Shown here: piece by piece, positions 25,932 through 52,400 of the stretch
Position numbering within the stretch: the first letter of the stretch is position 1
Layout of the letters: each line of letters begins with the position of its first letter
Origin: Zootoca vivipara
Taxonomy: Eukaryota
Assembly (NCBI RefSeq): GCF_963506605.1
Contig: NC_083291.1
Location: forward strand, 36,084,001-36,148,000
DNA: 64,000 bases
Direction: 5' to 3'
Translations under genes and position numbers: made by a program
The notes under the pieces: generated by a model
What the model was told of the DNA's origin: nothing
The model's input: only the letters and a program-made list of their open reading frames with translations
Database searches by the model: none

Positions 25932-25938
25932 ATGTAAA

Positions 25939-26919: not shown

Positions 26920-27487
26920 ATGCATTGAATGTGTTGTTGATGTTGATATATAGTTTATAAAGATAAAAACAGATACATTTCACCCATTGGAATTGGTTGA
27001 CGTGTTGCCTCCTTCTTCTTTTTTGTATTTTGGTGTTTTGACTCAGGTCTGCAACACAGGGGTTGTTTCATTAGCATTTAGGAAGGAGGTGCCAGGGAAA
27101 CATTTAGGGAACTAGCCTAGTCCCCCTATTCCAATGACTGCACACCACGGGGTAAGATGGAGGGTGATATATCTACCAGTCTTTTCTGCTCATTTTCTCA
27201 CTCCCCCTTCCTTTATGCAAGTCATGGCAGAGATCTCCATTGTATCCCTCAAAGCTCAATGTGCAGAAACTGAACCCCTGCTGACAATTTCTGCAGCTGC
27301 TTCAAACACAATTCTAGGATCCCAGCTGCTTCCTCTCTGGTACATGGAGAATCTCCTTTCTGGGGCCCAGTCCATCCCATCCCATCTCCTGTTCCAAATC
27401 AAAATCTTGCCAATGTAAAATGTTTAAAAAGAAGGCAGCCCTTAGACCATTGTGCTGTCATGCTCCTTTGGGTATCAATCTGTAGAT

Positions 27488-27623
27488 CAGGCACCCCCAA
27501 ACTTTGGCCCTCCAGATGTTTTGGACTACAATTCCCATCATCCCTGACCACTGGTCCTGTTAGCTAGAGATCATGGGAGTTGTAGGCCAAAACATCTGGA
27601 GGGCCGAAGTTTGGGGATGCCTG
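27488..27623. mobile_element. Palindromic hAT MITE
   Basis: CAGGCA...TGCCTG fold-back; perfect 8-bp TSD CTGTAGAT; mirrored at 51390-51525. Confidence 0.85.
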
Positions 27624-28834
27624 CTGTAGATTATCCCTCACATCTTTTCTGATCTGTGCATAGACCGCCCCCAGCCCCCAGAGATTATGCTTCTCCCCAG
27701 TTGTGGAGCAAACCAGAATCCTCTTGACATCCATACTCAAAGGAAAAAAAACTTTTCTAAGACTTATTAATGAGGACAAGCTAATTTGTTAAGCTGAATG
27801 ATGGGTTGGGTCTCTGAATGATGATTCTCCAGAGTTTATGCTATTGCATTATATTATTTCTGGAGGGGGAACCTGTTTGAGACGTCCTTGGACCCTGGAG
27901 AGCACCACCCTTAAGCAGAGATGAACACTGCTTCCCTTGCATCAGAAAACACAGAGCTAATCTCCTCAGCAGATGAAGGAGGCCAGTTTCCTCCTATGCA
28001 GAACAAGTCCACTTCCTTTGTTCTTCACATTGACAGGAGCAAGTGAGCAAACAGGAAGTGCCTTTACTTAAGTAAGTGTGAATATAGTTATGTTTTTGGG
28101 GTGGGAGCAAGACTCCCCTAAAATATCTGGATTCAGTGAAGGGTTAGAATTTAAGGAAACCCCTAAATTACTGGGCCTAATGGGCCTTGAGTTTAAAGTG
28201 GGTTTTCCATGTCCAGGAAACCACTTGGCGGAAGAACCATCAAAAGGTAATCACTGGAATGGCCGAGACAAACCCATTAAGAAGGTCAGTTTCTGTCTGG
28301 GCTGGACAGAAAATGGGGAAAGCCCTCTCTGAGGTAAGAGATAATTAGCAGAGACAAAAGGACAGAGTTTCAGGAGGGTGGAGAACTGCAGTGGGCAATG
28401 AGGTAAGCAAACAGGAAAGAATTGTCATTTTTGAAGCTGGAGAGTGGGGGGGGGGCAAAGCATGAAGCTGCAGAAGAGGTGAGACATGATATTTGGAGTC
28501 TCTTGGAATCTGAGGCTGCAGCAATGGAAGAAACAGGACCCTCTTGGGATGTGAATGCTCTGATCTCTCTCAATCTAGACACAGATTGCATGCATATGTA
28601 AATAAACCATGTATCATAAAGAGATCACGGACTCCACTTGGCCTCATTGTTCCAAAAGTAAACACAGACCCTGGTAAGCATGCATGGCACCTCTAGAATC
28701 TCTCACTGCTCATAGATTGGTGAAACAATGTGTCACCCACTTAAAAGCTTCTAACATCCAAGAAACCTATTGAGGATTATTTAATGGTTACTAATCAGTA
28801 TCTGCTGAATTCACCCAGTACAATTAAAGCCCAT

Positions 28835-29410
28835 GACCCCTCAATTTCTACATTCCAGTCATGAGTCTTATCCCACCAGGTTTCAATAATTTCTATTAGG
28901 TCATATCTGCCACCCTGCATTAAGAGTTCAAATTCGTCTTCATTGTTTCCTATACTCTGTGCATTTGTATAGAGACAACTGAAACCACAAGACGTTCCCT
29001 CCAGCTGCTTCCTTCTTGTAGTTTCCTGCCCTTTAGCAGGTTTCTGTAGCACCACCTCAGTTTCCTGTGCATCAACGTGTTTTCCTTTCATCTGTAATAT
29101 TGTCTCCCTCCTCCTCAGGATTTAGTTTAAAGCTCTCCTGATGGGGTTCATGAGACCCTTAGCAAACACATTCTTGCCAACCACTGTGAGGTATAACCAA
29201 TCTCTTGCCAGAAGTCCATCCTCAAGGAAGCAGGAACCATGGTCCAAGAAGCCAAACCATTCCTGACAACACCTGAGCAGCCACTGGTTTACCTCCAGTA
29301 TCTTCCCCTCTCTTCCTGGGCCACAACCTTCAACAACAAGCAGTGATGAAAAAACCCACCTGTACCCTAAGGCTCTTCAGCTTCTAATCCAGAGTCTTAA
29401 AGTCCCTTGC
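28835..29410 (-). mobile_element. CR1 LINE ORF1 end / ORF2 endonuclease start (in OR 5' intron)
   Basis: CLYTNAQSIGN...ETWWD..HDWNV (AP endonuclease start) preceded by ORF1 esterase-like VNQWL..FGFLDHG; mirrored at ~49600-50180. Confidence 0.8.
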
Positions 29411-29568
29411 TATGTCTGTGTCTGTCAGTATCTCAAAACCAGAATACAATATGAGGGGAGGAAAGAGGGATTTCTGCATAGCTCAGTTTGGGCAGCTAGC
29501 AAGCAGAGGGTGGGGAATTTACTAGCCTAAACATTTCTTCTTCTTGCCCCTACAGCAGCTTTCGCCTA

Positions 29569-30504
29569 ATGAGTCCTGGGAATGCAACAGACTTCTCTGA
29601 ATTATTCCTCCATGGCTTCCCAACCCAGCCAGAGTTTCAAGGGCTCCTCTTCCTGCTATTCCTCTCCATGTACCTGCTGGCCATTCTGGGGAACACAACA
29701 ATCATCTTCTTGATCCGTTCTGATTTACAGCTCCTCCACGCTCCTATGTATTTCTTCCTCAGCAACCTTGCCTTAGCTGACTTGGGCTTCATCTCCACCA
29801 CAGTCCCCAAAGTGCTAGAAAACTTGTTGTCTCAAAAAAAGACCATCTCCTATCGTGCCTGCCTGGTGCAGATGTACTTTTATATGTCTTTTGGCAACTC
29901 AGACAGCTTCCTGTTGGCTTCCATGGCCTACGACCGTTTCGTGGCCATCTGCTTCCCCTTGCATTATTCTGCCCTGATGAGCCGTCAGCGTTGCCTCCTC
30001 CTCGCATCAGTGTCCTGGGTTGTCCCTATTGTCCACTCTCTGCTTTATACCATTTTGATGTCCCACATTTCTTTCTGTGACTCTAGGGAGATCCCACATT
30101 TCTTCTGTGATCTTTACCCAGTGTTGGATATCTCTTGCTCAGACAGCAGTGTCATTGAAATGCTGCTTCTGACTGAAGGGGTGATGGAGATCCTAGGGCC
30201 ATTTGTGCTGATCATCATCTCCTATATGTGCATTTTCTACACCATCCTGAAGATTCCATCAAACTCTGGAAAGAAAAAGGCTTTCTCCACCTGCGGGTCC
30301 CACATTGCTGTGGTGGTCTTGTTCTATGGCACTGTGAGCTGGGTTTATTTCAAGCCACGTTCCAACAACTCGGATCGCAAGGACACTTTGGCTGCTGTCA
30401 TGTATACCATGGTGACCCCTATGCTGAATCCCTTCATTTACAGTCTCAGGAATAGTGAAATGAAAGCGGCCATGAAGAGGGTCATTAGGCACCATTTTCA
30501 TTAG
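29569..30504 (+). CDS. Olfactory receptor, class II (family 1-like), 311 aa, intact; twin B1
   Basis: LHAPMYFFLSNL, MAYDRFVAIC, KAFSTCGSH, PMLNPFIYSLRN; NAT sequon; acceptor just upstream. Confidence 0.97.
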   Translation: MSPGNATDFSELFLHGFPTQPEFQGLLFLLFLSMYLLAILGNTTIIFLIRSDLQLLHAPMYFFLSNLALADLGFISTTVPKVLENLLSQKKTISYRACLVQMYFYMSFGNSDSFLLASMAYDRFVAICFPLHYSALMSRQRCLLLASVSWVVPIVHSLLYTILMSHISFCDSREIPHFFCDLYPVLDISCSDSSVIEMLLLTEGVMEILGPFVLIIISYMCIFYTILKIPSNSGKKKAFSTCGSHIAVVVLFYGTVSWVYFKPRSNNSDRKDTLAAVMYTMVTPMLNPFIYSLRNSEMKAAMKRVIRHHFH

Positions 30505-30929
30505 TGTCTTTAGCTGTCACATCTTATAGTAGCAGGAGTGGGAGCCAACATCACTTGGGCAGCAGAGCACACAGATGGTGTGTCCGCTTTCGGGTCTGTT
30601 TTAAACTTTGGCCAAAATGTTGGGTATCTGTAATGGGGAAATGGACTGCAATCTGTCTTTCAGGTATTTGGGGCATGCATGTGCTAGGATTAGCTGAACT
30701 TTTGTTGTTGTTGTTGTTGTTTAGTCATTTAGTCGTGTCCGACTCTTCATGGACCAGAGCATAACTACCATAAGCAAATATCTTAACCCTAATACATGCA
30801 GTAAAGATCAGCATCATAATCATATATTTGCCTTATATTAACTATCACTCCCCTGTAAGTAATAACCAGACTTCAAATAGATAATTAAATTTTGCAAGAG
30901 TAGATTTATGATTTAGGAATAGTATATAC

Positions 30930-31228
30930 AAATCCATGCAACGGGGTGAGCTCACATTGCTAGGTCCCAGCTCCTGCCCACCTAGCAGTTCGAAAGCACA
31001 TCAAAGTGCATGTAGATAAATAGGGACCGCTGCGGCGGGAAGGTAAATGGTGTTTCCGTGTGCTGCTCTGGTTCGCCAGAAGCAGCTTTGTCATGCTGGC
31101 CACATGACCCGGAAGCTGTCTGCGGACAAACGCCAGCTCCCTCGGCCTATAGAGCGAGATGAGTGCCGCAACCCCAGAGTCGGATACGACTGGACCTGAT
31201 GTTTATCGGCCCCTTTACCTTTACCTTT
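30930..31228 (+). mobile_element. Sauria SINE, 5'-truncated, left arm only
   Basis: SINE body and ACCTTT tail; empty site at ~48095 in the right arm. Confidence 0.88.
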
Positions 31229-31449
31229 ATAGGCAACCAAATGGTCTTTGCATTATTCACTCACACAGGAAGCCTCCCCCCTCTCTATAGGGTATAGTTG
31301 GATTCAAACTAACCATCTCCCTTGTTCTCTCTCTTTTTTAGCATGTGTCTGTGGCATATTGTTACACCCACGCTTTAGGGTTTTTTTGGTTCACTGGGGA
31401 CTTATTTTACTCTTTAGATATAAGTTGTATACTGTATATGTGCTTAATG

Positions 31450-31587
31450 CAGTGTTTCTCAAACTTGGGTTTTTTTCAGCTATTGTTGAACTACAACTCC
31501 CATCATCCCTAGCTAGCAGGATCCCATCAGTGGTGATGGGAATTCTTGTTCAACAACAGCTGGAGACCCAAGTTTGAAAAACACTGA
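31450..31587. mobile_element. Palindromic hAT MITE
   Basis: CAGTGTTTCTCAAAC...GTTTGAAAAACACTG; TSD (g/a)CTTAATG; mirrored at ~47740-47875. Confidence 0.8.
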
Positions 31588-31944
31588 CTTAATGATTGCA
31601 TTGCTGCCCATATATGTGCAGGGCCATCTGAAGCATATCCAGAACCATGGTGCAAAGATCCCTCCGGCGCCCCCCCTCCCCGTTTGCCAGAGTGGTTGAC
31701 CTTTTCCCAAGTCTCTGCAGGGATAGCTCTCCTCCCGCAGAGGCTTGGGAGGCAAGCTGCATGCCAGCCAGCCATATGGTTGATGGAGCACAGCTGGTGG
31801 GCATGCAGGGAAAGGGGAGCCGAGCAGCTCCCCCACTCGCTGGGGTGCCCCTGAGAGGCCAGTGCCCTGGCACAATGCGCCAGTAAGCCCAATAGGAAAG
31901 ACAGCTTTGTATATGTGTAATCTTGCTGCCCAAGACAACACCCA

Positions 31945-33245
31945 TTTAGAATCATAGAATCATAAAATTCCTGAAATGTAGAGTTGGAAGGGACCCTAAG
32001 GGTCATCTAGTTCAACCCCTTGCAATGCAGGAATCTCAACTAAAGCATTCATGGCAGATGGCTATCTAACCTCTGCTTAAGAACCTCCAAAGAAGGAGAG
32101 GTCACCCAGGTTCGAGGAAGCTCGTTCCACTCTCTTCAGAAAGTTTTTCCATATGTTTAGCTGGAATCTCTTGTAACTTGAAGCCATTGGTTCAGATTGT
32201 ACCCTCTGGAGTACAATCTTCCTCCATCTTCCATGTGATAGCCCTTTAGGTATTTGAAGATGACTACTATCATATCTCCTCTCATGGAGGACTTTGTCAA
32301 AAAGCCTAACTGAAATCAAGTGTCAGCATAGTGTCAACAAGTGAACACGCACAGCTGACTGATTTGGACGGTGGCCCAGAATTGGGGAATGCAGAAGAGG
32401 AGCAGAGTGCCCAGTTCAGAGAGATAGCAGGAAACAGCTCTCCCAAAGCTGTTAATAATCCACCCGGTGTGAAGCAGAGGCGGAGGTGTGGGTTACAAGA
32501 GAGGGGGAGGCTGACGTCACTTAATAGACGAAAGAAGGCGTAGTTCCCACAGTGGGATAAAGGGAGGCGGAACAACGCCAAGCACTCAGATAAGTCATCA
32601 GACTAGTCATAAGTCAGTGAGAGCAGTGGGCTGGAGACCTGTGGCTTGGTTGTATTTTATTACTGTAAATAAACTTTCTCTTCAACGTTGAAATGTGTGG
32701 GCGTCTTGAGGTCGCGACTTAACATCAAGATTCTCCACAGCATTCCTCTGATCCACTTGCAACGCTATAAAAAATAATAATGAGATTTGTCTGGCATGAC
32801 TTGTTTTTGAGAAAGCCATGCTGGGTCTTAGTAATCACAGCATCCTTTTCTAAATGCTCACACCGATCAAGTAATTATTTGTTCTAGGACCTTTTCTGGT
32901 ATCAATGTCAAGCTGACTGGTCTTCCTCCCATCTCCCTTTGAAGATGGGGACAAAAATTGCTCGCCTCCACACCGCAGGGACCTCACTTGCTCTCCAAGA
33001 ATTCTCAAAGATTATAGAGAGAGGTTCTGAGATTACATCCTCGAGCTCCTTCTAGGACCCTTGGTGCAGCTCATCATTCCCTGGAGATTTGAATTCATTT
33101 AAAGTAACTAGATGTTCCCTTATCTTTTCCTATTTTGTTCTTCAGCTCCCTCCTTGCATTGCTGGGCACTGTTTTCATTTATGTGTAATAAACCAATCTT
33201 CCTCTATTTCCTCGTGTGCAGATTCTTTGTTGGGCAAAAGGGTAA
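31945..33245 (-). mobile_element. Degenerate CR1 fragments (interrupted by a solo LTR)
   Basis: CR1 3' end AGAATCATAGAATCAT and RT-region remnants; mirrored at 45715-47285. Confidence 0.75.
32321..32724 (+). mobile_element. Solo LTR, 404 bp, left arm only
   Basis: TG...CA termini, perfect 5-bp TSD TCAAG, AATAAA at ~32668; empty site at ~46240. Confidence 0.85.
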
Positions 33246-33802
33246 AGGTATACAACCATTTTAAATGGATGCATGCAGTGACTCCACAGAAAAGTTTCCA
33301 ATCCTCTCAGAGTTGCACAATTAAAATATTTGTAATGCGTGAGCCATGGCCAGTGCAAGACCTTTGGGCACGTGAAGTGAACCACAAAATGGTGTCCCCC
33401 TCCGGGGAAGAAGGAATGAGTGAAGATCTAGATCAGGAAGGAGCAGCAGTGGCCAGTTCATTCATTGGAGACCAGATCTGCTGCCCCATGGATCCTGCTG
33501 CCTGAGGCAATCACATCACCTTGCTTCATGGGTGGGCCAGCCCTAGTGTGAACGTCTTGCCACCTGGAGTGTGTGTAGCAAGTTTTGAATATCAGAACAT
33601 CACACATTAAACGCTTCCCGATACAAGGCTGCCTTCTGATGTCTATGGAAGGTTGTATAATTATTTATCTTTTTGACATCTGACAGGAGTTCCACACCGT
33701 GGGCGCCACTACCCAGAAGGCCCTCTGCCAGATTCCCTGTAACCTCACTTCTCACAAGTTCTACATGCCTGTCTTTCTTCCCTTACTTTTCACAGCTGAG
33801 CC

Positions 33803-33980
33803 ATGGGAGAAGAGAACCACACAGGCCCATTGCAGTTCATTCTCCTGGATGTCTCTGCCCAGCCAGAGCATCAGCATCTCTTTGCCTTGCTCTTCCTCAC
33901 CATGTACCTGTTGATCCTTCTGGGGAATCTGCTGATTGTCCTTCTGGTCTACTCTGATGCTCATTCACTTGAAACCTCCC
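33803..33980 (+). pseudogene. Truncated olfactory receptor (N-terminus and TM1 only)
   Basis: Acceptor cttttcacAG, then MGEENHT..FILLDVS..PEHQHLFALLFLTMYLLILLGNLLIVLLVYSDAH; homology stops before the PMY motif. Confidence 0.85.
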
Positions 33981-34071
33981 CAAGCTTCCATCCATAAGTT
34001 TGTCAAAATAAACTTTTGACATGAATTCTAGCAGGATCTCTATAACACAACAGTAGAAACTGTTATTTATT

Positions 34072-35178
34072 ATTTTTTTACAATCTTCTTATGATATAAA
34101 AACCTCTGGAATTTAATTATTACAAAAAATAATGCAAGTTAATTGGATTCTAAGGGAAAGGAAGATCCTGATCATTTCTATTCAGTATGTGTTATTTTAT
34201 TTCATACAATTTATTTCCCAGATTTACTAGCATTTCTACTGATGAGAAAAAATGTTTCTCATGATTTTAGATTCTGTGTTATTATATGTTTACATTTTGT
34301 ATGCCCTGCCTTTAGTTGCCTATATTAATGAATTGTTTAGTTTGTGATTTATCTTTCTGTATTCCTTGGGTATGATATGGCATTCTACCTGTTAGCTTCC
34401 AAATTAAGAGACAAGTATCTATGAAATCTCCAGAAATTCTCTGCTATTTATGGGGAGCGATCTCGTCTTGAATGCCTCCAGACTGTGGGTTTTATTGCTC
34501 GAGGCATTCAAACATATTCTGGAAAATGTAAGTTTGTGCAATTAAAGTGGATTGCTCTATCACCCTTGTGCAACAAATCCACTTTAGGGGGGGGGGACTA
34601 CTTATTGTGGTCATTAAAGTGATAGGAAAATGCATTGAAAAGTGTGGAATGAGGTAATTAAGAACCAGAGAGAAGATACATAAACACCAAGGAAGGAAAC
34701 CAGGTCTGCTCACTGTCCTATAACAGTGAGAAGACAAACCAAGTCCAACCCAAATTAAAATTTCTCAATAAAGACCAGATGTGGTCTAACCTGTGTGGAA
34801 GCCTTGTGCAAGTAAATCAGGATGAGGTCATTATATAATCATACATTTTCCAAACTTACTTTTATTAGTTTTCATATTGTTATGGAACCACAGAGACAAG
34901 TAAACAAAGACAAAAAATTCATTAATATAGCCAATTAAAGGCATGGCATACAAAATGTAAACATATAATAACACAGAATCTAAAATCATGAGAACCATTT
35001 TTCTCATCAGTAGAAATGCTAGTAAATCTGGGAAATAAATTGTATGAAATAAAATAACACATACTGAATAGAAATGATCAGGATCTTCCTTTCCCTTAGA
35101 ATCCAATTAACTTGCATTATTTTTTGCAATAATTAAATTCCAGAGGTTTTTATATCATAAGAATATTGTAAAAAAATT
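34072..35178. repeat. AT-rich inverted repeat, ~290-bp arms and ~520-bp spacer
   Basis: 34072-34365 is the reverse complement of ~34882-35178 (near-identical mirrored ORFs 34143+ and 35106-). Confidence 0.9.
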
Positions 35179-35474
35179 AAAAATTAAATATTTACATGTC
35201 TAATTTCTAAAAGATTTTCCACAAGGTGACTTGCAACAAATTTCAAAGGCACTCAGGTTTACATTCTAGGTTTACAGACCTCCAAGCTAAGGCGCCTCCC
35301 CTGAATATTTGTCAACAGGCAAGTCTCTCTTTGAAGAGAAGTGTGTGGCCACCACAGAAAAGGCTCATTTCATGTCTAACGTCTGAAAGTGAGGGCGCAG
35401 AAAATGACCTCCGTATTCAGGAAAGTTCCCATGGAGCAAGCAGCCTTTCTTTTAGACACCTCCATCTTAAGCCA

Positions 35475-35838
35475 CCCAGGTGGCTTAAGGGACCCAGGTG
35501 GTGCTGTGGTTAAACCACTGAGCCTAGGGCTTGCTGATGAGAAGGTCGGCGGTTCGAATCCCTGTGACGGGGTGAGCTCCCGTTGCTTGGTCCCAGCTCC
35601 TGCCAACCTAGCAGTTCGAAAGCACGTCAAAATGCAAGTAGATAAATAGGAACCGCTACAGCGGGAAGGTAAACGGCGTTTCCATGTGCTGCTCTGGTTT
35701 GCCAGAAGCGGCTTTGTCATGCTGGCCACATGACCTGGAAGCTATACGCCGGCTCCCTCGGCCAATAATGCGAGATGAGCGCGCAACCCCAGAGTCGGTC
35801 ACGACTGGACCTAATGGTCAGGGGTCCCTTTACCTTTT
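35475..35838 (+). mobile_element. Sauria SINE, full length
   Basis: Head, B box, tail; TSD ATCTTAAGCCA. Confidence 0.92.
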
Positions 35839-36042
35839 ATCTTAAGCCAAACAGGGCTCTGAAGGCTACACTTTGAATTGTACTCAGAAGCAGTCCAGCA
35901 ACTGCAGTATAAATTTAGCTGGCGCAAAGAGTGTGGTTTTATTTATGTGGCAAATGGCTGAAAAGCTAGATAAAAGTTGGCAACTTCCCATTGATGGCCC
36001 TCTTTGTTGGTTTTCCAAACTGGTGCACGGCTGACTCTTGAA

Positions 36043-37011
36043 TCATCTCATATCCTCTATGCCTCTTGTCCTCTGAAACCAAAGCCTTAGTAGCCTTCTC
36101 ATTGCCTCGTGCATCTCAGTGTTCCTCAGGCTATATATGAAAGGATTGAGCATCGGCGTCACCACCGTATAGAATATAGATGCCACTTTCAATCTGGAGC
36201 CAGAGTAGGTGGACGAGGGGCGGATGTAGGTGCCCATCAGGCTGCCATAGAATATGGCCACAGTGGTGAGGTGGGTGCTGCAGGTGGAGAAGGCCTTATA
36301 CTTCCCCGAAGCTGATGGAACCTTCAAAACCACCGATAAAATGAAGAGGTAGGAGAGGAGAATGAGTGTGAGAGGTCCAAGCATTGTTGCGGTGCCTTCA
36401 ATCATGAGCAGTGTTTCAGCTGATGAGGTGTCTGAGCAGGAGAGCTTGAGCAAAGGGTGCATGTCGCAGAAGAAATGGGGGATTTCCCGGGAGCCACAGA
36501 AGGAAAGTTTAGAGATGGTAGATACATACAGTATCCCTTGGGAAAAAGACAGGAGCCAAGACCCAGAAGCCAACAGCAGGCAGCGCTTGTAGCTCATGAT
36601 TGTCGTGTAGTGTAGCGGGTGGCAGACGGCCACGTAGCGGTCGTATGCCATGGAGGCCAAGAGGAAGTTATCTGTGGTGCAAAAGACCACAAAGAAATAC
36701 AGCTGGGCCAGGCAGCCGTTGTAGGAGATGGTGTTTGATTGAGAAACCAAGATGTGCAGCATCTTGGGCACAGCGTTGGAGCTGAATCCTAGGTCAGCCA
36801 AGGACAGGTGGCTGAGGAAGAAGTACATGGGGGCGTAGAAGAGAGAGCTGTTGGAGGAAATCAGGAAGATGATCAAGAGGTTCCCCAGAAGGCTAACGAG
36901 GTACATAGAGAGGAAGATGGGGAAGAGGAGCCCCCCGAATTCTGGCGCAGAGGAGAGGCCCAGGAGGATGAATCCAGCAACGCTGGTTTGGTTGTCTTGT
37001 CCTGTTTCCAT
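36043..37011 (-). CDS. Olfactory receptor, class II (family 1-like), 322 aa, intact
   Basis: PMYFFLSHLS, MAYDRYVAVCHPLHY, KAFSTCSTHL, PMLNPFIYSLRN; NQT sequon; acceptor 7 nt upstream; candidate upstream donor AAG|GTGAGT at 39859/39858. Confidence 0.97.
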   Translation of the reverse strand: METGQDNQTSVAGFILLGLSSAPEFGGLLFPIFLSMYLVSLLGNLLIIFLISSNSSLFYAPMYFFLSHLSLADLGFSSNAVPKMLHILVSQSNTISYNGCLAQLYFFVVFCTTDNFLLASMAYDRYVAVCHPLHYTTIMSYKRCLLLASGSWLLSFSQGILYVSTISKLSFCGSREIPHFFCDMHPLLKLSCSDTSSAETLLMIEGTATMLGPLTLILLSYLFILSVVLKVPSASGKYKAFSTCSTHLTTVAIFYGSLMGTYIRPSSTYSGSRLKVASIFYTVVTPMLNPFIYSLRNTEMHEAMRRLLRLWFQRTRGIEDMR

Positions 37012-37701
37012 GGCTCTGCTGAGAATGGGAATAAAAGAAAGGGAATCACGTTTTTGTTTACACCCAGGTTCTGTACTTCAGCGTATGCAATAATAAAATA
37101 AATAAATCTAGTTTCCAAGGTGACAGATGCGGGGACAGGGAAGGAGAAACAGTGACCATCATAATATAACCAAGCAGAGAAACTGGGCTTCCTCTCTACC
37201 TTGGTGCCCTTTGGAATAATTATGGCCTTTCAAACAGGGAGGGTCTTGCTTTTGTTTATTACTGTGTTGTGTGTTTTTGTGTTTCTATACTGTAAACTAC
37301 CCTGTGATCCTTGGATGAAGGGAGGAACAGAAATTTAATAAATGTATAAAAGAATAGGCTGGCTTTATTCAAGATGTGCTGGTTTTGCACTGACTCCCTA
37401 ACTATGTACCTTGTGGTCCTTACTCACAAGAATTCCAATGCTACAATCCTGTACCCGCTTACCTGGGAGTAAACGCCATTAAATACAAAGAGCCTTACTT
37501 CTGAATAGGCATGCAGACCATTGTACTGTAGGGACTCGGCTGTACAGCTGCAAATAAACGTTTTAAGTGCGTTTTAAGTACAACATACAATGTGACGCTA
37601 GATGGCGATGGTGAGCCTTATGGAAAATTCAATGTACTGTATTTTTAAAAACGCTTAAAGACACATTTTCAAAGCAGTTTTTATATTTGTCTAGATTCCA
37701 C

Positions 37702-37952
37702 TTTCCTGCCAACCTAGCAGTTCAAAAGCACAAAGTGCAAGTGGATAAATAGGTACCACTCTGGCGGGAAGGTAAACGGCGTTTCTGTGCGCTGCTCTGG
37801 CTCACCAGAAGCGGCTTTGTCCTGCTGGCCACATGACCCAGAAGCTGTCTGTGGACAAATGTCGGCTCCCTCGGCCTATAGAGCGAGATGAGCGCCGCAA
37901 CCCTAGAGTCGTTTGTGACTGGACCTAACGGTCAGGGGTACCTTTATCTTCT
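37702..37952 (+). mobile_element. Sauria SINE, 5'-truncated
   Basis: SINE 3' body; TSD TAGATTCCAC. Confidence 0.85.
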
Positions 37953-38040
37953 TAGATTCCACCTAGGTTAATTATAGACTGAATTCTTAATGACTGCTTG
38001 GATTTCAGCTTCTTATTATGTCGTAGCATTTGCAGACAAT

Positions 38041-38215: not shown

Positions 38216-38329
38216 CAGACAATACAGTAGTATGTAGGGAGTGCCTTCTCTCATATTAAACTACCAGAGGAAAGATAAGTCTTGGTTGTTAGGAAGAAAG
38301 GGAGGGGGAAGTGGGGAAGTTAGTAGGTC

Positions 38330-39264: not shown

Positions 39265-39269
39265 TTTGT

Positions 39270-39565: not shown

Positions 39566-39566
<1 letters not shown>

Positions 39567-41011: not shown

Positions 41012-41607
41012 CATCTTTACAACAAACCGATAAGTAGGTCAGTTGTGTGTTTTTTTATTATTATTGCCGTGTTGCAGATCAGGGACTGAGACAAAGACTA
41101 GTCATGCACATTCCAATTTTTGCCTATCAGATAAATTTGTTTGTGAAATGTTTTCTTCAGTTTGGGGCTGGTGTGTTTTACCAACATGGAGGGTATTGGG
41201 TGGTGAGCTATGTGAAACCTCTACTTAATCCATAAGGCTTGACAGGGTATAGAACTGATGGACAAGGTGGAAGTACTGGGAACCTTGGGAGGAAGTCAGC
41301 TTGCTGTTGATACCAGGAAAGGTCCTAGATAGAACAAATAATGAAACAGTTGGTCTGTGAGCACTTAGAAAAAGATGCAGGGATGACTAAGATTCGACAT
41401 AGGTTTCTCAAAAACAAATCATGGTACATGAATCTCATTTCTTCTTCTTTTTGATAGTGCTGCAGGATTGTCGGAATGCTGTTGACATAATGTACCTTGA
41501 TTTCAGTAAGGCTGAAATTTCTGTGCAAAATAACAATAAAAAACAGGGAAAATTGGTACGACAGGCTATAAGAAAGTATTATATAATATAAAAAGAATAA
41601 AGTAATA

Positions 41608-41649
<42 letters not shown>

Positions 41650-41952
41650 CTGGGCGGCTTCCAACAAAACATTAAAATACAGAAATCCATCAAACATTAA
41701 AAGCTTCCCTAAACAGGGCTGCCTTAAGATGTCTTCTAAAGGTCTGGTAATCGTTGTTCTCTTTGACCTCTGGTGGGAGGGCGTTCCACAGGGTGGGTGC
41801 CACTACTGAGAAGGCCCTCTGCCTGGTTCCCTGTAACTTGGCTTCTCGTAGCGAGGGAACCGCCAGAAGGCCCTTGGCACTGGACCTCAGTGTCCGGGCA
41901 GAACGATGGGGGTGGAGGCGCTCCTTCAGGTATACTGGACCGAGGCCGTTTA
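41012..41952 (+). repeat. Direct duplication, copy 1
   Basis: Matches 42968-43935 (SINE remnant, CR1 fragment, L2 3' end). Confidence 0.9.
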
Positions 41953-42966
41953 GGGCTTTAAAGGTCAACACCAACACTTTGAATTGTGCTCGGAAATGTA
42001 CTGGGAGCCAATGTAGGTCTTTCATTATTATTTTTATAATATTTTTTATTAGAATTTTCCAAAATATAAAAATAGGTAAACACAAAAAGAAAAAACTGTA
42101 ACAATAACACTATACAAAAAAGATAAAAAGATAAAAAAAAGAAGAAAAGAAAACACACAATTAAAGATACTTGTTCCTTTGTATGTTCACATTGTATATA
42201 GGGACCCCCTCGGGTTCCCTTCCCCTGTGGTTCATTAGCACGTTTATACTTTAGCAAATTCTAAACCATTTAATCACCTTGTATAATCTTATTTTACTCC
42301 TTTCATTTAACATATTCATAAGTTCCACAGTTTATTTACAACCTAATTCTGATCTTGATATATCACTTTTGCATATTTTTTAAAATATAGCTTAAAGTCT
42401 TTCCATTCTTCTTCTGTCACTTCCTCTCCCCGGTTGCGGATTCTTCCGGTCATCTCAGCCAGTTCCATAAACTCCATCATCTTCATCTGCCAGTCGTCGA
42501 TCATTGGTAGTACATGTGATTTCCAGTTCTTGGCGATTAGAATTCTTGCCGCCGTCGTAGCATACATGATGTAGCATCATGTATGCAATGTAGGTCTTTC
42601 AGGACCGGTGTTATGTGGTCTCGGCGGCCGCTCCCAGTCACTAGTCTAGCTGCCGCATTCTGGGTTAGCTGTAGTTTCTGGGTCACCTTCAAAGGTAGCC
42701 CCACGTAGAGCGCATTGCAGTAGTCCAAGCGGGAGATAACTAGAGCATGCAGCACTCTAGCGAGACAGTCTGCGGGCAGGTAGGGTCTCAGCCTGCGTAC
42801 CAGATGGAGCTGATAAACAGCTGCCCTGGACACAGAATTGACCTGCGCCTCCATGGACAGCTGTGAGTCCAAAATGACTCCCAGGCTGCGCACCTGGTCC
42901 TTCAGGGGCACAGTTACCCCATTCAGGACCAGGGAGTCCTCCACACCTGCCCGCCTCCTGTCCCCC
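41607..42966 (-). mobile_element. L2-clade LINE 3' part interrupted by an L1 fragment
   Basis: SRLDYCNALYVGLP, LHWLPV, RAFSVVAPTLWNALP; L1 3' fragment 42025-42585 flanked by 16-bp TSD CAATGTAGGTCTTTCA. Confidence 0.88.
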
Positions 42967-42967
42967 A

Positions 42968-43552
42968 CATCTTTACAACAAACCTATAAGTAGGTCAGTT
43001 GTTTTTTTTTTATTATTCCTGTGTTGCAGATCAGGGACTGAGACAAAGACTAGTCATGCCCATTCCAATTTTTGCCTATCAGGTAAATTTGTTTGTGAAA
43101 TGTTTTCTTCAGTTTGGGGTTGGTGTGTTTTACCAACATGGAGGGTATTGGGTGGTGAGCTATGTGAAACCACTACTTAATCCATAAGGCTTGACAGGGT
43201 ATAGAACTGATGGACAAGGTGGAAGTACTGGGAACCTTGGGAGGAAGTCAGCTTGCTGTTGATACCAGGAAAGGTCCTAGAACAAATAATGAAACAGCTG
43301 GTCTGTGAGCACTTAGAAAAAGATGCAGTGGTTACTAAGATTCAACATAGGTTTCTCAAAAACAAATCATGGTACATGAATCTCATTTCTTCTTCTTTTT
43401 GATAGTGCTGCAGGGTTGTCGGAATGCTGTTGACATAATGTACCTTGATTTCAGTAAGGCTGAAATTTCTGTGCAAAATAACAATAAAAAATAAGGAAAA
43501 TTGGTACGACAGGCTATAAGAAAGTATTAGATAATATAAAAAGAATAAAGTA

Positions 43553-43591
<39 letters not shown>

Positions 43592-43935
43592 TTATTTATA
43601 CCCCGCCCATCTGGCCGGGTTCCCCCAGCCACTCTGGGCGGCTTCCAACAAAACATTAAAATACAGAAATCCATCAAACATTAAAAGCTTCCCTAAACAG
43701 GGCTGCCTTAAGATGCCTTCTAAAGGTCTGGTAATTGTTGTTTTCTTTGACCTCTGGTGGGAGGGCGTTCCACAGGGTGGGTGCCACTACCGAGAAGGCC
43801 CTCTGCCTGGATCCCTGTAACTTAGCTTCTCGTAGCGAGGGAACCGCCAGAAGGCTCTTGGCACTGGACCTCAGTGTCCGGGCAGAACGATGGGGGAGGA
43901 GATGCTCCTTCAGGTATACTGGACCGAGGCCGTTT
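42968..43935 (+). repeat. Direct duplication, copy 2
   Basis: Matches 41012-41952. Confidence 0.9.
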
Positions 43936-44917
43936 ATAAGTACATTCGATAACAGAAATGGTAAATACATTGGGAGCTGACAGGAAGTCTTTTGTATTGT
44001 AGTAAGAATGTATGATGAAACGGATTGTATAGGATTGAATTAATTTTTATTTGTATATTCAATACACAAGATTTGTTTTTGTTATTAATCAATTTCAATA
44101 AAGCATTAAAAAAAATGATATGCTTGTGGATTTTGTAGCTGATTGACTGACTGAACCCAAAGAATACTCATTCATGGTTTCTCGTCATCCTGGAAAAAAA
44201 TGGCAAGTGGGATGCCCCAGGATTCTGTCCTGGTCCTGTTGTCTTTATCAATGACTTGGATGAAGGAATTGAGGGGATGCTCATCACATTTGCAGGTGAC
44301 ACCAAACTACCAGAAGGAGGGGTAGCTAATGCTGCAGAAGACAGAATCAGGATTCAAGATGGCCTTAACAGTTTTGAAAAATGTAAGGTTCTACACTTAG
44401 GTGGGAATAACCAGCTGCACAATTATAAGATTTGGACATATAAGGACACCTGGCATGTGTCTAACTCTGGCTTGTGTGCCAACTTTCCTTTTATGTTTTG
44501 GTCATGTGCAAATTGAATAAGCACCTCCTCTCCCCAGGTGCAGACACAAGAGCTATCCAGAATCACATCTGATCAGCCTGAACAACTGAGGTCCAGCTCC
44601 GAGGGCCTTCTGGTGGTTCCCTCATTGTGAGAAGTGAGGTTACAGGGAATCTGGCAGAGGGCCTTCTGGGTAGTGGCGCCCACCCTGTGGAACTCCTGTC
44701 AGATGTCAAAAAGATAAATAATTATACAACCTTCCATAGACATCAGAAGGCAGCCTTGTATTGGAAGCGTTTAATGTGTGATGTTCTGATATTCAAAACT
44801 TGCTACACACACTCCAGGTGGCAAGATGTTCACACTAGGGCTGGCCCACCCATGAAGCAAGGTGATGTGATTGCCTCAGGCAGCAGGATCCATGGGGCAG
44901 CAGATCTGGTCTCCAAT

Positions 44918-45493
44918 TGTAGCCTTATTAGCTTCCAAGGGTCCTTTAGTTGCGCCCAGGCAGGACAGAGACAGTCAATAATGACACCGGTGGTTGAATT
45001 CAGAGAAAGAATTTAATCCTTATATTTAAGGGACTCTCGGTGATCCATGTTTCACGACAAGAGTAGAGTAACACAAATTTGCAAAGCTTCTTATATACTT
45101 CTTGGGCTCCTTCCCCCTCCTCTGTAAATGTGCGCACGCAAGGGGGTCACAAGTACATATAAGGAAGATCCGTGTCCGGTCCTGTGCATAAACACATGCT
45201 GACTCAGCCTTGAGTAAGACTATGCGTCAAGCATAGCAGCTTCCAGCGTCAAGCTTATCCACTGATAAGGCTTTCTCTGTGTTCCACACAAGGTCAGCTT
45301 ATTCGGCCTTGATAGGAAGCTGTCTCACTTACATTACACTTTGACACACAGAGAGAGGCAAAGAAAAAGCATTTTAAGCAAGGCATCCCAGGGAAAGGCG
45401 GAGGGTGGGGCTAAGCCACACAATCAGAATTATACAATGCAACTATATGATCAGATTTAGCTCAATAATACAATTAGCAAACCCCTCCCTTCA
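44918..45493 (-). mobile_element. Solo LTR, 576 bp, ERV1-like, right arm only
   Basis: Minus strand TGAAGG...GGCTACA, 4-bp TSD CAAT, TATATAA and ATTAAA on the minus strand; empty site at ~33465. Confidence 0.85.
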
Positions 45494-46477
45494 CAATGAA
45501 TGAACTGGCCACTGCTGCTCCTTCCTGATTTAGATCTTCACTCATTCCTTCTTCCCCAGAGGGGGACACCATTTTGTGGTTCACTTCACGTGCCCAAAGG
45601 TCTTGCACTGGCCATGGCTCACGCATTACAAATATTTTAATTGTGCAACTCTGAGAGGATTGGAAACTTTTCTGTGGAGTCACTGCATGCATCCATTTAA
45701 AATGGTTGTATACCTTTACCCTTTTGCCCAACAAAGACTCTGCACACCAGGAAATAGAGGAAGATTGGTTTATTACACACAAATGAAAACAGTGCCCAGC
45801 AATGCAAGGAGGGAGCTGAAGAACAAAATAGGAAAAGGTAAGGGAACATCTAGCTACTTTAAATGAATTCAAATCTCCAGGGAATGATGAGCTGCACCAA
45901 GGGTCCTAGAAGGAGCTCGAGGATGTAATCTCAGAACCTCTCTCTATAATCTTTGAGAATTCTTGGAGAGCAAGTGAGGTCCCTGCGGTGTGGAGGCGAG
46001 CAATTTTTGTCCCCATCTTCAAAGGGAGATGGGAGGAAGACCAGTCAGCTTGACATTGATACCAGAAAAGGTCCTAGAACAAATAATTACTTGATCGGTG
46101 TGAGCATTTAGAAAAGGATGCTGTGATTACTAAGACCCAGCATGGCTTTCTCAAAAACAAGTCATGCCAGACAAATCTCATTATTATTTTTTATAGCGTT
46201 GTAAGTGGATCAGGGGAATGCTGTGGATGTAGAGAGTCTTGATTTCAGTAAGGCTTTTTGACAGAAGTCCTCCATGAGAGGAGATATGATAGTCATCTTC
46301 AAATACCTAAAAAGCTATCACATGGAAGATGGAGCAAGATTGTACTCCAGAGGGTACAATCTGAACCAATGGCTTCAAGTTACAAGAGATTCCAGCTAAA
46401 CATATGGAAAAACTTTCTGAAGACAGTGGAACGATCTTCCTCGGTCCTGGGTGGCCTCTCCTTCTTTGGAGGTTCTT

Positions 46478-46763
46478 CCTATAGATAAATTTTATTGTTT
46501 AAAAGCACGATGAATAAAAACACAAATATACATCAGAAAAATACAAAAAGTTACAAATACAGGAAAAAAGAGGGGGGGGGAGAAAAAAGCTAGAAAGCCT
46601 AATCTTAAAAAAAAAAACATTCCTGTTCGTAGGAACCTGTGAAAGACAAGATAGATAAAAATGTATAACAAAAGGGATGGGAAGTATCTGTGTACAAAGG
46701 TAATGAGTGTATATATTCTGTATCTTTTCCTTTTTTCTAGAGGATAGATTTGGTTGGAATGTT
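46478..46763 (-). mobile_element. LINE (L1-like) 3' UTR fragment, right arm only
   Basis: 16-bp TSD TTCTTTGGAGGTTCTT; AATAAA on the minus strand; absent at ~32085. Confidence 0.7.
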
Positions 46764-46791
46764 TTCTTTGGAGGTTCTTAAGCAGAGGTTA

Positions 46792-47158
46792 GGGACCCAG
46801 GTGGCACTGTGGGTTAAACCACAGAGTCTAGGGCTTGCTGATCAGAAGGTTGGCGGTTTGAATCCCTGCAACGGGGTGAGCTCCCGTTGCTCGGTCCCAG
46901 CTCCTGCCAACCTAGCAGTTCGAAAGCACATCAAAGTGCAAGTAGATAAATAGGGACCGCTCCGGTGGGAAGGTAAACTGCGTTTCCGTGTGCTGCTCTG
47001 GTTCGCCAGAAGCAGCTTTGTCATGCCGGCTACATGACCCGGAAGCTGTCTGCAGACAAACGCCGGCTCCCTCGGCCTATAGAGCGAGATGAGTGCCGCA
47101 ACCCCAGAGTCGGACACGACTGGACCTGATGGTCAGGGGCCCCTTTACGTTTACCTTT
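46792..47158 (+). mobile_element. Sauria SINE, full length, right arm only
   Basis: TSD AAGCAGAGGTTA; absent at ~32070. Confidence 0.92.
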
Positions 47159-48510
47159 AAGCAGAGGTTAGATAGCCATCTGCCATGAATGCTTTAGTTG
47201 AGATTCCTGCATTGCAAGGGGTTGAACTAGATGACCCTTAGGGTCCCTTCCAACTCTACATTTCAGCAATTCTATGATTCTAAATGGGTGCTGTCTTGGG
47301 CAGCAAGATTACACACATACAAAGCCGTCCTTCCTATTGGGCTTACTGGCGCATTGCGCCAGGGCACTGGCCTCTCAGGGGCGCTCCAGCGAGTGGGGGA
47401 GCCTGCTCGGCTCCCCTTTCCTTCCTGCATGCCCACCAGCTGTGCCCCATCAACCATATGGCTGGCGGGCATGCAGCTTGCCTCCCAAGCCTCTGCGGGA
47501 GGAGAGCTATCCCTGCAGAGGCTTAGGATGGAAGCTGCGCCCTGCCAACTATATGGCTGGCGGGTGTGCAGCTTCCTTCCCAAGCCTCCAAGGGAGGAGA
47601 ACAATCCCCGCAGAGGCTTGGGAAAAGGTCAACCACTGTGAGAAATGGGGGGAGGGCGCCGGAGGGATCTTTGCACCACGGCGCCGGATATGCTTAAGAC
47701 GGCCTTGCACATATATGGGCAGCAATGCAATCATTAAGTCGGTGTTTCTCAAACTTGGGTCTCCAGCTGTTGTTGAACTAGAATTCCCATCACCACTGAC
47801 CACTGGTCCTGCTAGCTAGGGGTGATGGGAGTTGTAGTTCAACAGTAGCTGAGAACCCAAGTTTGAGAAACACTGCATTAAGCACATATACAGTATACAA
47901 CTTATATCTAAAGAGTAACATAAGTCCCCAGTGAACCAAAAAAAGCCCTAAAGCGTGGGTGTAACAATATGCCACAGACACATGCTAAAAAAAGAGAGAA
48001 CAAGGGAGATGGTTAGTTTGAATGCAACTATACCCTATAGAGAGGGCGGAGGCTTCCTGTGTGAGTGAATAATGCAAAGACCATTTGGTTGCCTATACTA
48101 GTCCTAAATCATAAATCTACTCTTGGAAGATTTAATTATATTTGAAGTCTGGTTATTACTTACAGGGGAGTGATAGTTAATATAAGGGACATATATGATT
48201 ATGATGCTGATCTTTACTGTATGTATTAGGGTTAAGAAAATATTTGCTTATGGTAGTTATGCTCTGGTCCATGAAGAGTCGGACACAACTAAATGACTAA
48301 ACAACAACAACAAAAGCTCAGCTAATCCTAGCACATGCAGGCCCCAAATACCTGAAAGACAGATTGCAGTCCGTTTCCCCATTACAGATACCCATCATTT
48401 TGGCCAAAGTTTAAAACAGACCCGAAAGCGGACACACCATCTGTGTGCTCTAGTGTCCAAGTGATGTTGGCTCCCACTCCTGCTACTATAAGATGTGACA
48501 GCTAAAGACA

Positions 48511-49446
48511 CTAATGAAAATGGTGCCTAATGACCCTCTTCATGGCCGCTTTCATTTCACTATTCCTGAGACTGTAGATGAAGGGATTCAGCATAGGGGT
48601 CACCATGGTATACATGACAGAGGCCACAGTGTCCTTGCGATCCGAGTTGTTGGAACGTGGCTTGAAATAAACCCAGCTCACAGTGCCATAGAACAAGACC
48701 ACCACAGCAATGTGGGACCCGCAGGTGGAGAAAGCCTTTTTCTTTCCAGAGCTGGATGGAATCTTCAGGATGGTGTAGAAAATGCGCACATAGGAGATGG
48801 CGATCAGCACAAATGGCCCCAGGACCTCCACCACCCCTTCAGTCAGAAGCAGCATTTCAATGACACTGCTGTCTGAGCAAGAGATCTCCAACAAAGGGTA
48901 AAGATCGCAGAAGAAATGTGGGATCTCCCTAGAGTCACAGAACGAAATGCGGGACATCAAAATGGTATAAAGCAGAGAGTGGACAATAGGGATAGCCCAG
49001 GACACTGATGCGAGGAGGAGGCAACGCTTACGGCTCATCAGGGCAGAATAACGCAGGGGGGAGCAGATGGCCACGTAACGGTCGTAGGCCATGGAAGCCA
49101 ACAGGAAGCTGTCTGAGTTGCCAAAAGACACATAAAAGTACATCTGCACCAGGCAGGCATGAAAGGAGATGGTCTTTTTATGAGACAACAAGTTTTCTAG
49201 CACTTTGGGGACTGTGGTGGAGATGAAGCCCAAGTCAGCTAAGGCAAGGTTGCTGAGGAAGAAATACATAGGAGCGTGGAGGAGCTGTAAATCAGAACGG
49301 ATCAAGAAGATGATTGTTGCGTTCCCCAGAATGGCCAGCAGGTACACGGAGAGGAATAGCAGGAAGAGGAGCCCTTGAAACTCTGGCTGGGTTGGGAAGC
49401 CATGGAGGAATAATTCAGAGAAGTCTGTTGCATTCCCAGGACTCAT
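48511..49446 (-). CDS. Olfactory receptor, class II (family 1-like), 311 aa, intact; twin B2
   Basis: OR motifs including MAYDRYVAIC; ~23 residues differ from 29569-30504. Confidence 0.97.
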   Translation of the reverse strand: MSPGNATDFSELFLHGFPTQPEFQGLLFLLFLSVYLLAILGNATIIFLIRSDLQLLHAPMYFFLSNLALADLGFISTTVPKVLENLLSHKKTISFHACLVQMYFYVSFGNSDSFLLASMAYDRYVAICSPLRYSALMSRKRCLLLASVSWAIPIVHSLLYTILMSRISFCDSREIPHFFCDLYPLLEISCSDSSVIEMLLLTEGVVEVLGPFVLIAISYVRIFYTILKIPSSSGKKKAFSTCGSHIAVVVLFYGTVSWVYFKPRSNNSDRKDTVASVMYTMVTPMLNPFIYSLRNSEMKAAMKRVIRHHFH

Positions 49447-52400
49447 TAGGCTAAAGCTGCCGTAGGGGCAAGAAGAAGAAATGTTTAGGCTAGTAAATTC
49501 CCCACCCTCTGCTTGCTAGCTGCCCAAACTGAGCTATGCAGAAATCCCTCTTTCCTCTCCTCATATTGTATTTTGGTTTTGAGATACTGACAGACACAGA
49601 CATAGCAAGGGACTTTAAGAAGCTGACATAGCAAGGGATTAGAAGCTGAAGGGCCTTAGGGTTTTTTCATCACTGCTTCCTGTTGATCGCTGTGGCCCAG
49701 GAAGAGAGGGGAAGATACTGGAGGTAAACCAGTGGCTGCTCAGGTGTTGTCAGGAATGGTTTGGCTTCTTGGACCATGGTTCCTGCTTCCTTGAGGATGG
49801 ACTTCTGGCAAGAGATTGGTTATACCTCACAGTGGTTGGCAAGAATGTGTTTGCTAAGGGTCTCATGAACCCCATCAGGGGAGCTTTAAACTAAATCCTG
49901 AGGAGGGAGACAATATTACAGATGAAAGGAAAACACGTTGATGCACAGGAAAATGAGGTGGTGCTACAGAAACCTGCTAAAGGGCAGGAAACTACAAGAA
50001 GGAAGCAGCTGGAGGGAACGTCTTGTGGTTTCAGTTGTCTCTATACAAATGCACAGAGTATAGGAAACAATGAAGACAAATTTGAACTCTTAATACAGGG
50101 TGGCAGATATGACCTAATAGAAATTATTGAAACCTGGTGGGATAAGACTCATGACTGGAATGTAGAAATTGAGGGGTCATGGGCTTTAATTGTACTGGGT
50201 GAATTCAGCAGATACTGATTAGTAACCATTAAATAATCCTCAATAGATTTCTTGGATGTTAGAAGCTTTTAAGTGGGTGACACATTGTTTCACCAATCTA
50301 TGAGCAGTGAGAGATTCTAGAGGTGCCAGGCATGCTTACCAGGGTCTGTGTTTACTTTTGGAACAATGAGGCCAAGTGGAGTCCGTTATCTCTTTATGAT
50401 ACATGGTTTATTTACATATGTATGCAATCTGTGTCTAGATTGAGAGAGATCAGAGCATTCACATCCCAAGAGGGTCCTGTTTCTTCCATTGCTGCAGCCT
50501 CAGATTCCAAGAGACTCCAAATATCATGTCTCACCTCTTCTGCAGCTTCATGCTTTGCCCCCCCCCCCCACTCTCCAGCTTCAAAAATGACAATTCTTTC
50601 CTGTTTGCTTACCTCATTGCCCACTGCAGTTCTGCTCCACCCTCCTGAAACTCTGTCCTTTTGTCTCTGCTAATTATCTCTTACCTCAGAGAGGGCTTTC
50701 CCCATTTTCTGTCCAGCCAAGACAGAAACTGACCTTCTTAATGGGTTTGTCTTGGCCATTCCAATGATTACCTTTTGATGGTTCTTCTGCCAAGTGGTTT
50801 CCTGGACATGGAAAACCCACTTTAAACTCAAGGCCCATTAGGCCCAGTAATTTAGGGGTTTCCTTAAATTCTAACCCTTCACTGAATCCAGATATTTTAG
50901 GGGAGTCTTGCTCCCACCCCAAAAACATAACTATATTCACACTTACTTAAGTAAAGGCACTTGCTCACTTGCTCCTGTCAATGTGAAGAACAAAGGAAGT
51001 GGACTTGTTCTGCATAGGAGGAAACTGGCCTCCTTCATCTGCTGAGGAGATTAGCTCTGTATTTTCTGATGCAAGGGAAGTGTTTGTTCATCTCTGCTTA
51101 AAGGTGGTGATCTCCAGGGTCCAAGGACGTCTCAAACAGGTTCCCCCTCCAGAAATAATATAATGCAATAGCATAAACTCTGGAGAATCATCATTCAGAG
51201 ACCCAACCCATCATTCAGCTTAACAAATTAGCTTGTCCTCATTAATAAGTCTTAGAAAAGTTTTTTTTTCCTTTGAGTATGGATGTCAAGAGGATTCTGG
51301 TTTGCTCCACAACTGGGGACAAGCATAATCTCTGGGGGCTGGGGGCGGTCTATGCACAGATCAGAAAAGATGTGAGGGATAATCTACAGCAGGCATCCCC
51401 AAACTTCGGCCCTCCAGATGTTTTGCCCTACAACTCCCATGATCCCTAGCTAACAGGACCAGTGGTCAGGGATGATGGGAATTGTAGTCCAAAACATCTG
51501 GAGGGCCGAAGTTTGGGGGTGCCTGATCTACAGATTGATACCCAAAGGAGCATGACAGCACAATGGTCTAAGGGCTGCCTTCTTCTTAAACATTTTACAT
51601 TGGCAAGATTTTGATTTGGAACAGGACATGGGATGGGATGGACTGGGCCCCAGAAAGGAGACTCTCCAGAGAGGAAGCAGCTGGGATCCTAGAATTGTGT
51701 TTGAAGCAGCTGCAGAAATTGTCAGCTTCTGCACATTGAGCTTTGAGGGATACAATGGAGATCTCTGCCATGACTTGCATAAAGGAAGGGGGAGTGAGAA
51801 AACGAGCAAAAAAGACTGGGGGATATATCACCCTCCCCCGTGGTGTGCAGTCGTTGGAATAGGGGGACTAGGCTAGTTCCCTAAATGTTTCCCTGGTGCC
51901 TCATTCCCAAAGCCTGGGAATCTTCTTCCCAGCTAAGGAAGGAGGCGCTATGCTCACGGGCACAACATCAACACCCCCCCATTGCCCTTGCAAGCTGGTG
52001 CCCCTACGAAAAAATTCGCCGCACAGCACTGCTCTTACCCCAAGTATATTTGGATGGGTGGGCTTCTGCCCACTCCATATTTTTGAGGGTTTTTTGAGCA
52101 GTGAGTATTTCCCCAGTCAGCTTGGTTTCATTTCGCAGGGGCAATAATGTCCTTGCAATTTTTTGGACATCCAAAACCACAGATTCTGGATCTACCCTGA
52201 GATGTCTTTTTAACAGTGCATTCTGCCTTGGAAATGTGAGAACCATCCCCAAAACATCCTGAATCCAGCCAATGCACACAACTTTAGTTGGGCTCAATAA
52301 ACCCTCCAACTACCCCTCCTATTTTTTTAACCACATCATGACCTCCTGGTAGCGACCTTCTTAAAAAACCCTAAGGGGCTAGTCCCTCTACTCAGGTAGT

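Follow-up and report, generated by a model that had tools for sequence, protein, structure and literature searches.

Two intact olfactory receptor genes in inverted arms of Zootoca vivipara: a probable lineage-specific segmental duplication with mosaic divergence

An olfactory receptor (OR) gene cluster was analyzed in a 64,000-nucleotide stretch of the Zootoca vivipara genome (NCBI RefSeq assembly GCF_963506605.1, contig NC_083291.1, forward-strand positions 36,084,001 to 36,148,000; this whole stretch is hereafter the window, and positions are counted from its first letter). Two long arms, one at 27077-33757 on the plus strand (arm L, 6,681 bp) and one at 44625-51911 on the minus strand (arm R, 7,287 bp), were colinear reverse complements of each other, each with an intact OR gene, and they bracketed a single-copy spacer of 10,867 bp (33758-44624). 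Judged from the aligned arms, the pair probably originated as a lineage-specific inverted segmental duplication of one OR unit within the class-II OR cluster of this species and appears to have been partly homogenized by gene conversion, a reading that we consider likely.

Arm structure and receptor genes

The arms were delimited and aligned by seed-and-extend repeat finding, gapped self-BLAST and block-wise MAFFT. Over 5,893 aligned sites, 151 substitutions were counted, corresponding to 97.44% identity and 2.56% divergence; with arms of 6.7 and 7.3 kb, these values lie above the bounds by which a segmental duplication is defined (at least 1 kb, at least 90% identity). Homology stopped sharply at 33757/44625 and faded over ~30 bp at 27077/51911; the sequence further out was unrelated. 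The original prediction had placed the two reverse complements at 27092-33757 and 44625-51896, coordinates that were off by no more than 15 bp. Arm L started 158 bp beyond the stop codon of the OR on its left (25939-26919); its other end lay 46 bp short of the ATG of the truncated OR that follows, within the pyrimidine tract that precedes the splice acceptor of this OR. The copied block is one complete intergenic-to-intergenic OR unit, comprising 2.5 kb of upstream sequence, the single coding exon and 3.25 kb of downstream sequence.

Each arm held a complete OR gene, as had been predicted; the promoter region and 5' intron assigned to each arm in that prediction are putative. An intact 311-aa open reading frame (ORF) was present at 29569-30504 on the plus strand in arm L and at 48511-49446 on the minus strand in arm R; both matched the Pfam family 7tm_4, with E-values of 8.5e-60 and 4.5e-62; their scores of 203 and 211 bits were well over the curated cut-off of 27. 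The arm ORs contained the motifs MAYDR and NPFIYSLRN, and the two genes were convergent. Their proteins differed at 23 of 311 residues, with non-synonymous (dN) and synonymous (dS) divergence of 0.034 and 0.039, respectively (dN/dS about 0.9). When Lacerta and Podarcis proteins were used as outgroups, the derived residues were shared out about evenly, with ~10 in each copy. In both arms, a polypyrimidine tract together with an AG 12-15 nt ahead of the ATG was recognized as a putative splice acceptor. The acceptor of arm L was a tandem CAGCAG (29553-29558), whereas that of arm R read CGGCAG (49457-49462), the upstream AG of the NAGNAG having been lost. A scan for O/E-like promoter motifs upstream of both ORs returned a single degenerate site in each arm, no more than expected by chance, and was given no evidential weight.

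Both genes had counterparts in public databases. The Z. vivipara RefSeq protein XP_034996734.1 was the arm L protein over residues 1-304, followed by an alternative spliced C-terminus, and the exact sequence of the arm R protein was present in NCBI on a Zootoca contig. A further entry, XP_034996735.1, was of the R type and found in nr only, without a contig; it differed from the protein of 48511-49446 at four residues (56, 216, 220 and 221). Accession versions point to an earlier annotation, of a different assembly or individual, as its source, in which case both the L-type and the R-type gene would have been assembled twice and the window would derive from a newer long-read assembly. Four residue differences in one 311-aa gene between two assemblies or individuals represent high non-synonymous variation. 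An L-type conversion patch at residues 216-221 of XP_034996735.1 was considered and rejected; V216 and M220 were ancestral by Lacerta/Podarcis polarization, showing that the difference is ordinary polymorphism and gives no evidence of conversion.

Arm-private insertions and distinctness of the two copies

Colinearity was broken by five large arm-private indels of 95-679 bp, with clean empty sites in the opposite arm. Arm L alone carried a SINE-like (short interspersed element) insertion of 305 bp at 30923-31227, with its empty site in arm R at 48094-48098, and a 413-bp insert at 32321-32733 with the 6-bp direct repeat ATCAAG on both flanks. Private to arm R were a 679-bp insert at 46478-47156, which contained a SINE copy (46791-47159) and had its empty site in arm L at 32080, an insert of about 580 bp at 44918-45497 with ATTG microhomology at its edges, and an extra unit of a 95-bp tandem repeat at 47525-47619. 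The SINE copies in arms L and R belonged to one family and were direct on the plus strand, that is, opposite relative to the arms, and they occupied different arm positions, indicating that they were inserted independently after the duplication. At least eight copies of this ~300-350-bp SINE-like family, 76-93% alike, were present in the window (1580-1923, 3038-3346, 16922-17259, 30931-31229, 35488-35837, 37704-37950, 46791-47159 and 54166-54501). The two copies scanned were not recognized by Rfam, and an Rfam scan of 37100-53000 gave no match.

Haplotigs are expected to be homologous up to the contig end. The original prediction had named, as the outcome that would overturn it, two haplotypes of one locus mis-scaffolded across a gap, and an assembly artefact of this kind (or an uncollapsed haplotig) draws on two observations. 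A run of 137 Ns (38330-38466) does lie in the spacer, about 0.8 kb off the geometric center between the arms, and a window taken from the 2020 short-read/mate-pair assembly would lie in contigs with many closed gaps (PMC7643610). However, non-homologous sequence was found on both sides of each arm, with 4.6 kb of it between arm L and the N run and 6.2 kb between arm R and the N run. The arms also diverged by 1.4-3.9%, in addition to the five large indels; for comparison, heterozygosity across the Z. vivipara genome is reported as 0.46% (PMC13560796), smaller by a factor of 3 to 8. Homology reaching a contig end or gap and divergence near heterozygosity, the marks of an uncollapsed haplotype, were thus both lacking. 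Further, L-type and R-type genes occurred in two RefSeq annotation versions, and the accession-version pattern suggests a newer long-read assembly. The unique flanks, the divergence above heterozygosity and the independent SINE insertions contradict mis-scaffolded haplotypes, and we regard an artefact as quite improbable.

Mosaic divergence between the arms

Divergence was distributed in two tiers. A high-divergence core at 29312-32763 in arm L, with its arm R counterpart at about 46198-49704, had 106 substitutions in 2,700 sites (3.9%; 96.1% identity), compared with 45 in 3,193 sites (1.4%; 98.6% identity) in the edges outside this 3.4-kb core. The likelihood ratio of the two-tier split was 37.6, a value reached in none of 200 permutations (Fisher p = 1e-9), and the contrast persisted at non-CpG sites (3.08% in the core vs 1.08% in the rest). 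Four of the five large private indels were located inside the core. Most of the coding sequence was included in the core, while its first third belonged to the low-divergence tier (1.6%). The non-coding 3' part of the core was at least as diverged (62/1517, 4.1%) as the coding sequence (32/936, 3.4%), showing that selection on the protein cannot explain the core. The elevated divergence is regional, reaching well past the gene, and is not a protein-specific signal; the coding sequence exceeded only the 5' flank and the distal 3' flank in divergence. This mosaic fits arm-to-arm gene conversion at the edges.

A different history would have a young duplication, about 1.4% diverged throughout, in which the core was later raised by ectopic conversion from an outside OR paralogue or by positive selection together with hypermutability. 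Ectopic conversion and diversifying selection are known in OR families, and the dN/dS of about 0.9 with 23 amino-acid changes between the copies would agree with such a course. The divergence of the non-coding 3' core and the excess remaining at non-CpG sites speak against it, as does the even division of derived residues between the copies. Moreover, the top protein hits included no third Zootoca paralogue closer than the Lacerta/Podarcis orthologues, making an outside conversion donor less plausible. We therefore consider a young duplication with a secondarily raised core unlikely.

Orientation of the arms and the neighboring inverted repeat

Both arms lie on one chromosome and are in opposite orientation as assembled; their physical orientation hinges on the join across the 137-N run. 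This run, which the original prediction had flagged as an assembly gap in the spacer, may be such a gap or a deliberate mask, and it lies in non-coding spacer sequence. Its flanks showed no overlap or redundancy, with a best local score of 9-10 against a maximum of 13 in shuffles. No coding feature was found across it; the only ORFs there ran through the Ns themselves, and there was no OR similarity nearby. Each arm lies wholly on one side of the run, so that a true scaffold join there would leave open only the orientation and adjacency of the right-hand block and would cast no doubt on the existence of two copies.

If the N run is a scaffold join, the window itself leaves the sequence from 38467 onwards unoriented with respect to 1-38329. 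Both copies could then be real and the block right of the run mis-oriented, making the arms direct repeats from an ordinary dispersed tandem duplication; a fused gene model in Podarcis raffonei (described below) shows that tandem placement is possible for this subfamily. On the other side, a sized run of 137 Ns is unlike a fixed-length Hi-C gap and likelier reflects local paired or long-read links, which fix orientation. In addition, a neighboring inverted repeat, IR1, lies wholly in uninterrupted sequence 109-130 bp away, showing that inverted OR duplication does happen here. A mis-oriented block is, in our estimate, very improbable.

IR1 spanned 19249-26968, with arms at 19249-21212 and 24918-26968 and a 3.7-kb spacer, and it held twin 326-aa ORs that differed at 5 residues. 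Its right arm ended at 26947-26968, somewhat closer to arm L than the ~140 bp first proposed; four of the six intact ORs are accordingly located inside inverted arms, in line with that proposal. The IR1 twin genes (19298-20278 and 25939-26919) differed at 9 codons, all between codons 25 and 167, with codons 168-326 free of differences. Identity was therefore complete over the outer ~520 bp of both IR1 arms, a mosaic of the same kind as in the 7-kb arms that may mark a recent conversion tract.

Relatives and mode of cluster growth

Members of the subfamily were found in related lizards, with two or three proteins each in Lacerta agilis, Podarcis muralis and P. raffonei. In the protein tree these formed clusters by genus (Lacerta pair, support 91/93; Podarcis clade, 97/94), and the Zootoca L and R proteins fell unresolved at the base. 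Clustering by genus fits recurrent lineage-specific duplication or concerted evolution, which the protein data do not separate, and both this clustering of the lacertid copies and the two-tier divergence of the arms are also compatible with independent duplications. Sampled 31-mers of 28301-38300 were shared at about 0.18 in sequencing runs of other species vs 0.64-0.78 in conspecific runs. The lower value corresponds to about 5% divergence; with a core at 3-4%, this suggests that the duplication took place after or around the split from those relatives.

In P. raffonei, XP_053227858.1, a 663-aa 'uncharacterized protein', contained two complete ORs of the same subfamily in one gene model and probably results from annotation reading through two tandem genes. 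Such a fusion implies two adjacent copies on one strand in P. raffonei, indicating that the subfamily also expanded in tandem. The proposal of cluster growth by inverted, not direct tandem, duplication was not supported as a rule: it drew on only two events in one window, and the P. raffonei model implies tandem copies.

Spacer contents and other features of the window

All the spacer contents listed in the original prediction were present. An intact OR of 322 aa was identified by ORF and Pfam search at 36043-37011 on the minus strand. The truncated OR at 33803-33965 on the plus strand retained ~54 codons from the N-terminal end, preceded by a splice acceptor 9 bp ahead of the ATG, and its OR similarity ended abruptly after 'SDAH'; no other OR fragments, including the remainder of this gene, were found in the window. 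By gapped self-BLAST, a small fold-back was delimited at 34065-34338 vs 34912-35184 (274 bp, 96% identical), and a direct tandem duplication of about 0.95 kb on the plus strand at 41012-41952 and 42968-43936 (92.7%). The two halves of the spacer shared only dispersed repeats. Just left of the N run, a 175-bp GC-rich element (38041-38215) had terminal inverted repeats CAGGGCCG...CGGCCCTG and an 8-bp target-site duplication, CAGACAAT, at 38033-38040 and 38216-38223; by its appearance it is a hAT-type miniature inverted-repeat transposable element.

Four direct copies (90-94%) of a ~200-330-bp element, probably a dispersed repeat, were located at 15960-16171, 23546-23864, 38933-39260 and 53231-53549, and a larger direct match, 22763-23863 vs 52449-53549 (93%), included this element. 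An older tandem unit might be read from these direct matches, which link the IR1 spacer with the right half of the 10.9-kb spacer and with the right flank, but dispersed elements were judged likelier, the associated ORs being ~52% identical and the matching pieces ~93%. Between OR genes, a 441-aa ORF at 14030-15355 on the plus strand contained a reverse-transcriptase domain (RVT_1, E 1e-34) and is probably a fragment of a long interspersed element. To the right of the OR cluster, a 643-aa ORF at 55813-57744 on the minus strand matched DUF4629 (E 5e-9).

Discussion

The observations are best explained by a sequence of events in which a reversed copy of one complete OR unit would have been placed 10.9 kb from the original, with a single-copy spacer remaining between the two, an architecture such as fold-back or template-switch inverted duplication would produce. 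Both copies remained intact and would each have gained about 10 private amino-acid changes, while SINE and other insertions presumably accumulated independently in the central part of each arm. Conversion between the arms may have kept homogenizing the indel-free edges (1.4%); the insertions would have broken homology in the core, which includes the greater part of the coding sequence, so that it was no longer converted and diverged to 3.9%. The arm pair could further act as a substrate for non-allelic homologous recombination (NAHR). NAHR between inverted repeats inverts, rather than deletes, the intervening DNA, and the expectation in the original prediction that recombination between the arms would invert the spacer without loss of genes follows from this established knowledge.

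Several points weigh against a lineage-specific inverted duplication with partial conversion. The inverted microhomology at the spacer/arm junction was 1 bp only, and the origin cannot be pinned to a fold-back mechanism on that account. The longest perfect tract between the arms was 347 bp (32760-33106 vs 46201-45855), followed by tracts of 189 and 179 bp. Homologous recombination calls for uninterrupted identical tracts of a few hundred bp, and one such tract was found; with a single perfect tract of at least 200 bp, the arms would offer recombination a modest substrate. If the N run is a real scaffold gap, how the arms are oriented to each other hinges on the join made there, and an unannotated donor paralogue could conceivably account for the mosaic. 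The support as a whole comes from comparison of assembled sequence.

The arms were compared with three known systems. In the human 8p23.1 inversion, as described in PMC3371712 (citing Giglio et al. 2001), the inverted segment is bracketed by OR-containing inverted low-copy repeats, REPD and REPP, with two subunit age classes. The resemblance lies in the paired paralogous OR-region blocks on one chromosome, in their being substrates for NAHR inversion, and in the two age classes, which match the two-tier divergence of the Zootoca arms. The human repeats measure 0.6-1.1 Mb and bracket 4.5 Mb, whereas the Zootoca arms of 7 kb bracket 11 kb, and the inversion is demonstrated and polymorphic in humans, whereas in Zootoca it is the repeat structure that was observed. 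The Zootoca pair is also lineage-specific and lies on an autosome-sized lizard chromosome.

The likeness to sex-chromosome palindromes, which the original prediction had drawn, was upheld in part. As in the palindromes of the human and primate Y and X, inverted arms with intact genes flank a unique spacer, and the higher divergence of the core (3.9%) than of the edges (1.4%) would fit conversion between the arms. By contrast, the identity of the Zootoca arms was 97.4% rather than >99%, so that homogenization would be partial only; the arms of 6.7 and 7.3 kb were below 8 kb; the 10.9-kb spacer was longer than the arms; and the arms held chemoreceptor genes, not testis genes. In identity, arm length and spacer length the comparison therefore fails.

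In human fold-back inverted duplications (Hermetz et al. 2014, PMC3907307), a copy, a single-copy spacer and an inverted copy follow one another as they do here, and the reported spacer range of 0.8-70 kb (median 3.4 kb) takes in both the 10.9 kb between the arms and the 3.7 kb of IR1. Those duplications are terminal and pathogenic and extend over megabases, whereas the Zootoca duplication is interstitial, 7 kb in size, and fixed or old; its 1-bp junction microhomology also differs from the 2-8 bp of most sequenced human junctions (PMC3907307). The arms probably represent an ordinary inverted segmental duplication, a type that has been described before in receptor clusters of mammals.

A far more ambitious scenario can be imagined, in which the spacer inverts recurrently and IR1 and the 7-kb arms form an autosomal lacertid palindrome system. 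Conversion would keep the regulatory flanks alike while the receptor cores diverge, and flips would reorder and reorient the ORs relative to cluster-level control elements, acting as a heritable switch of receptor choice. We consider this highly improbable and mention it as speculation.

The existing picture of OR cluster evolution is left unchanged by the Zootoca arms. What they provide is a base-pair-level record of the reverse copying of a lizard OR unit and of the later evolution of both copies, in which both genes kept intact reading frames, the two proteins changed rapidly, SINEs were gained independently in each arm, and the arms look partly homogenized. They also offer a concrete candidate for an 11-kb inversion polymorphism in Zootoca.

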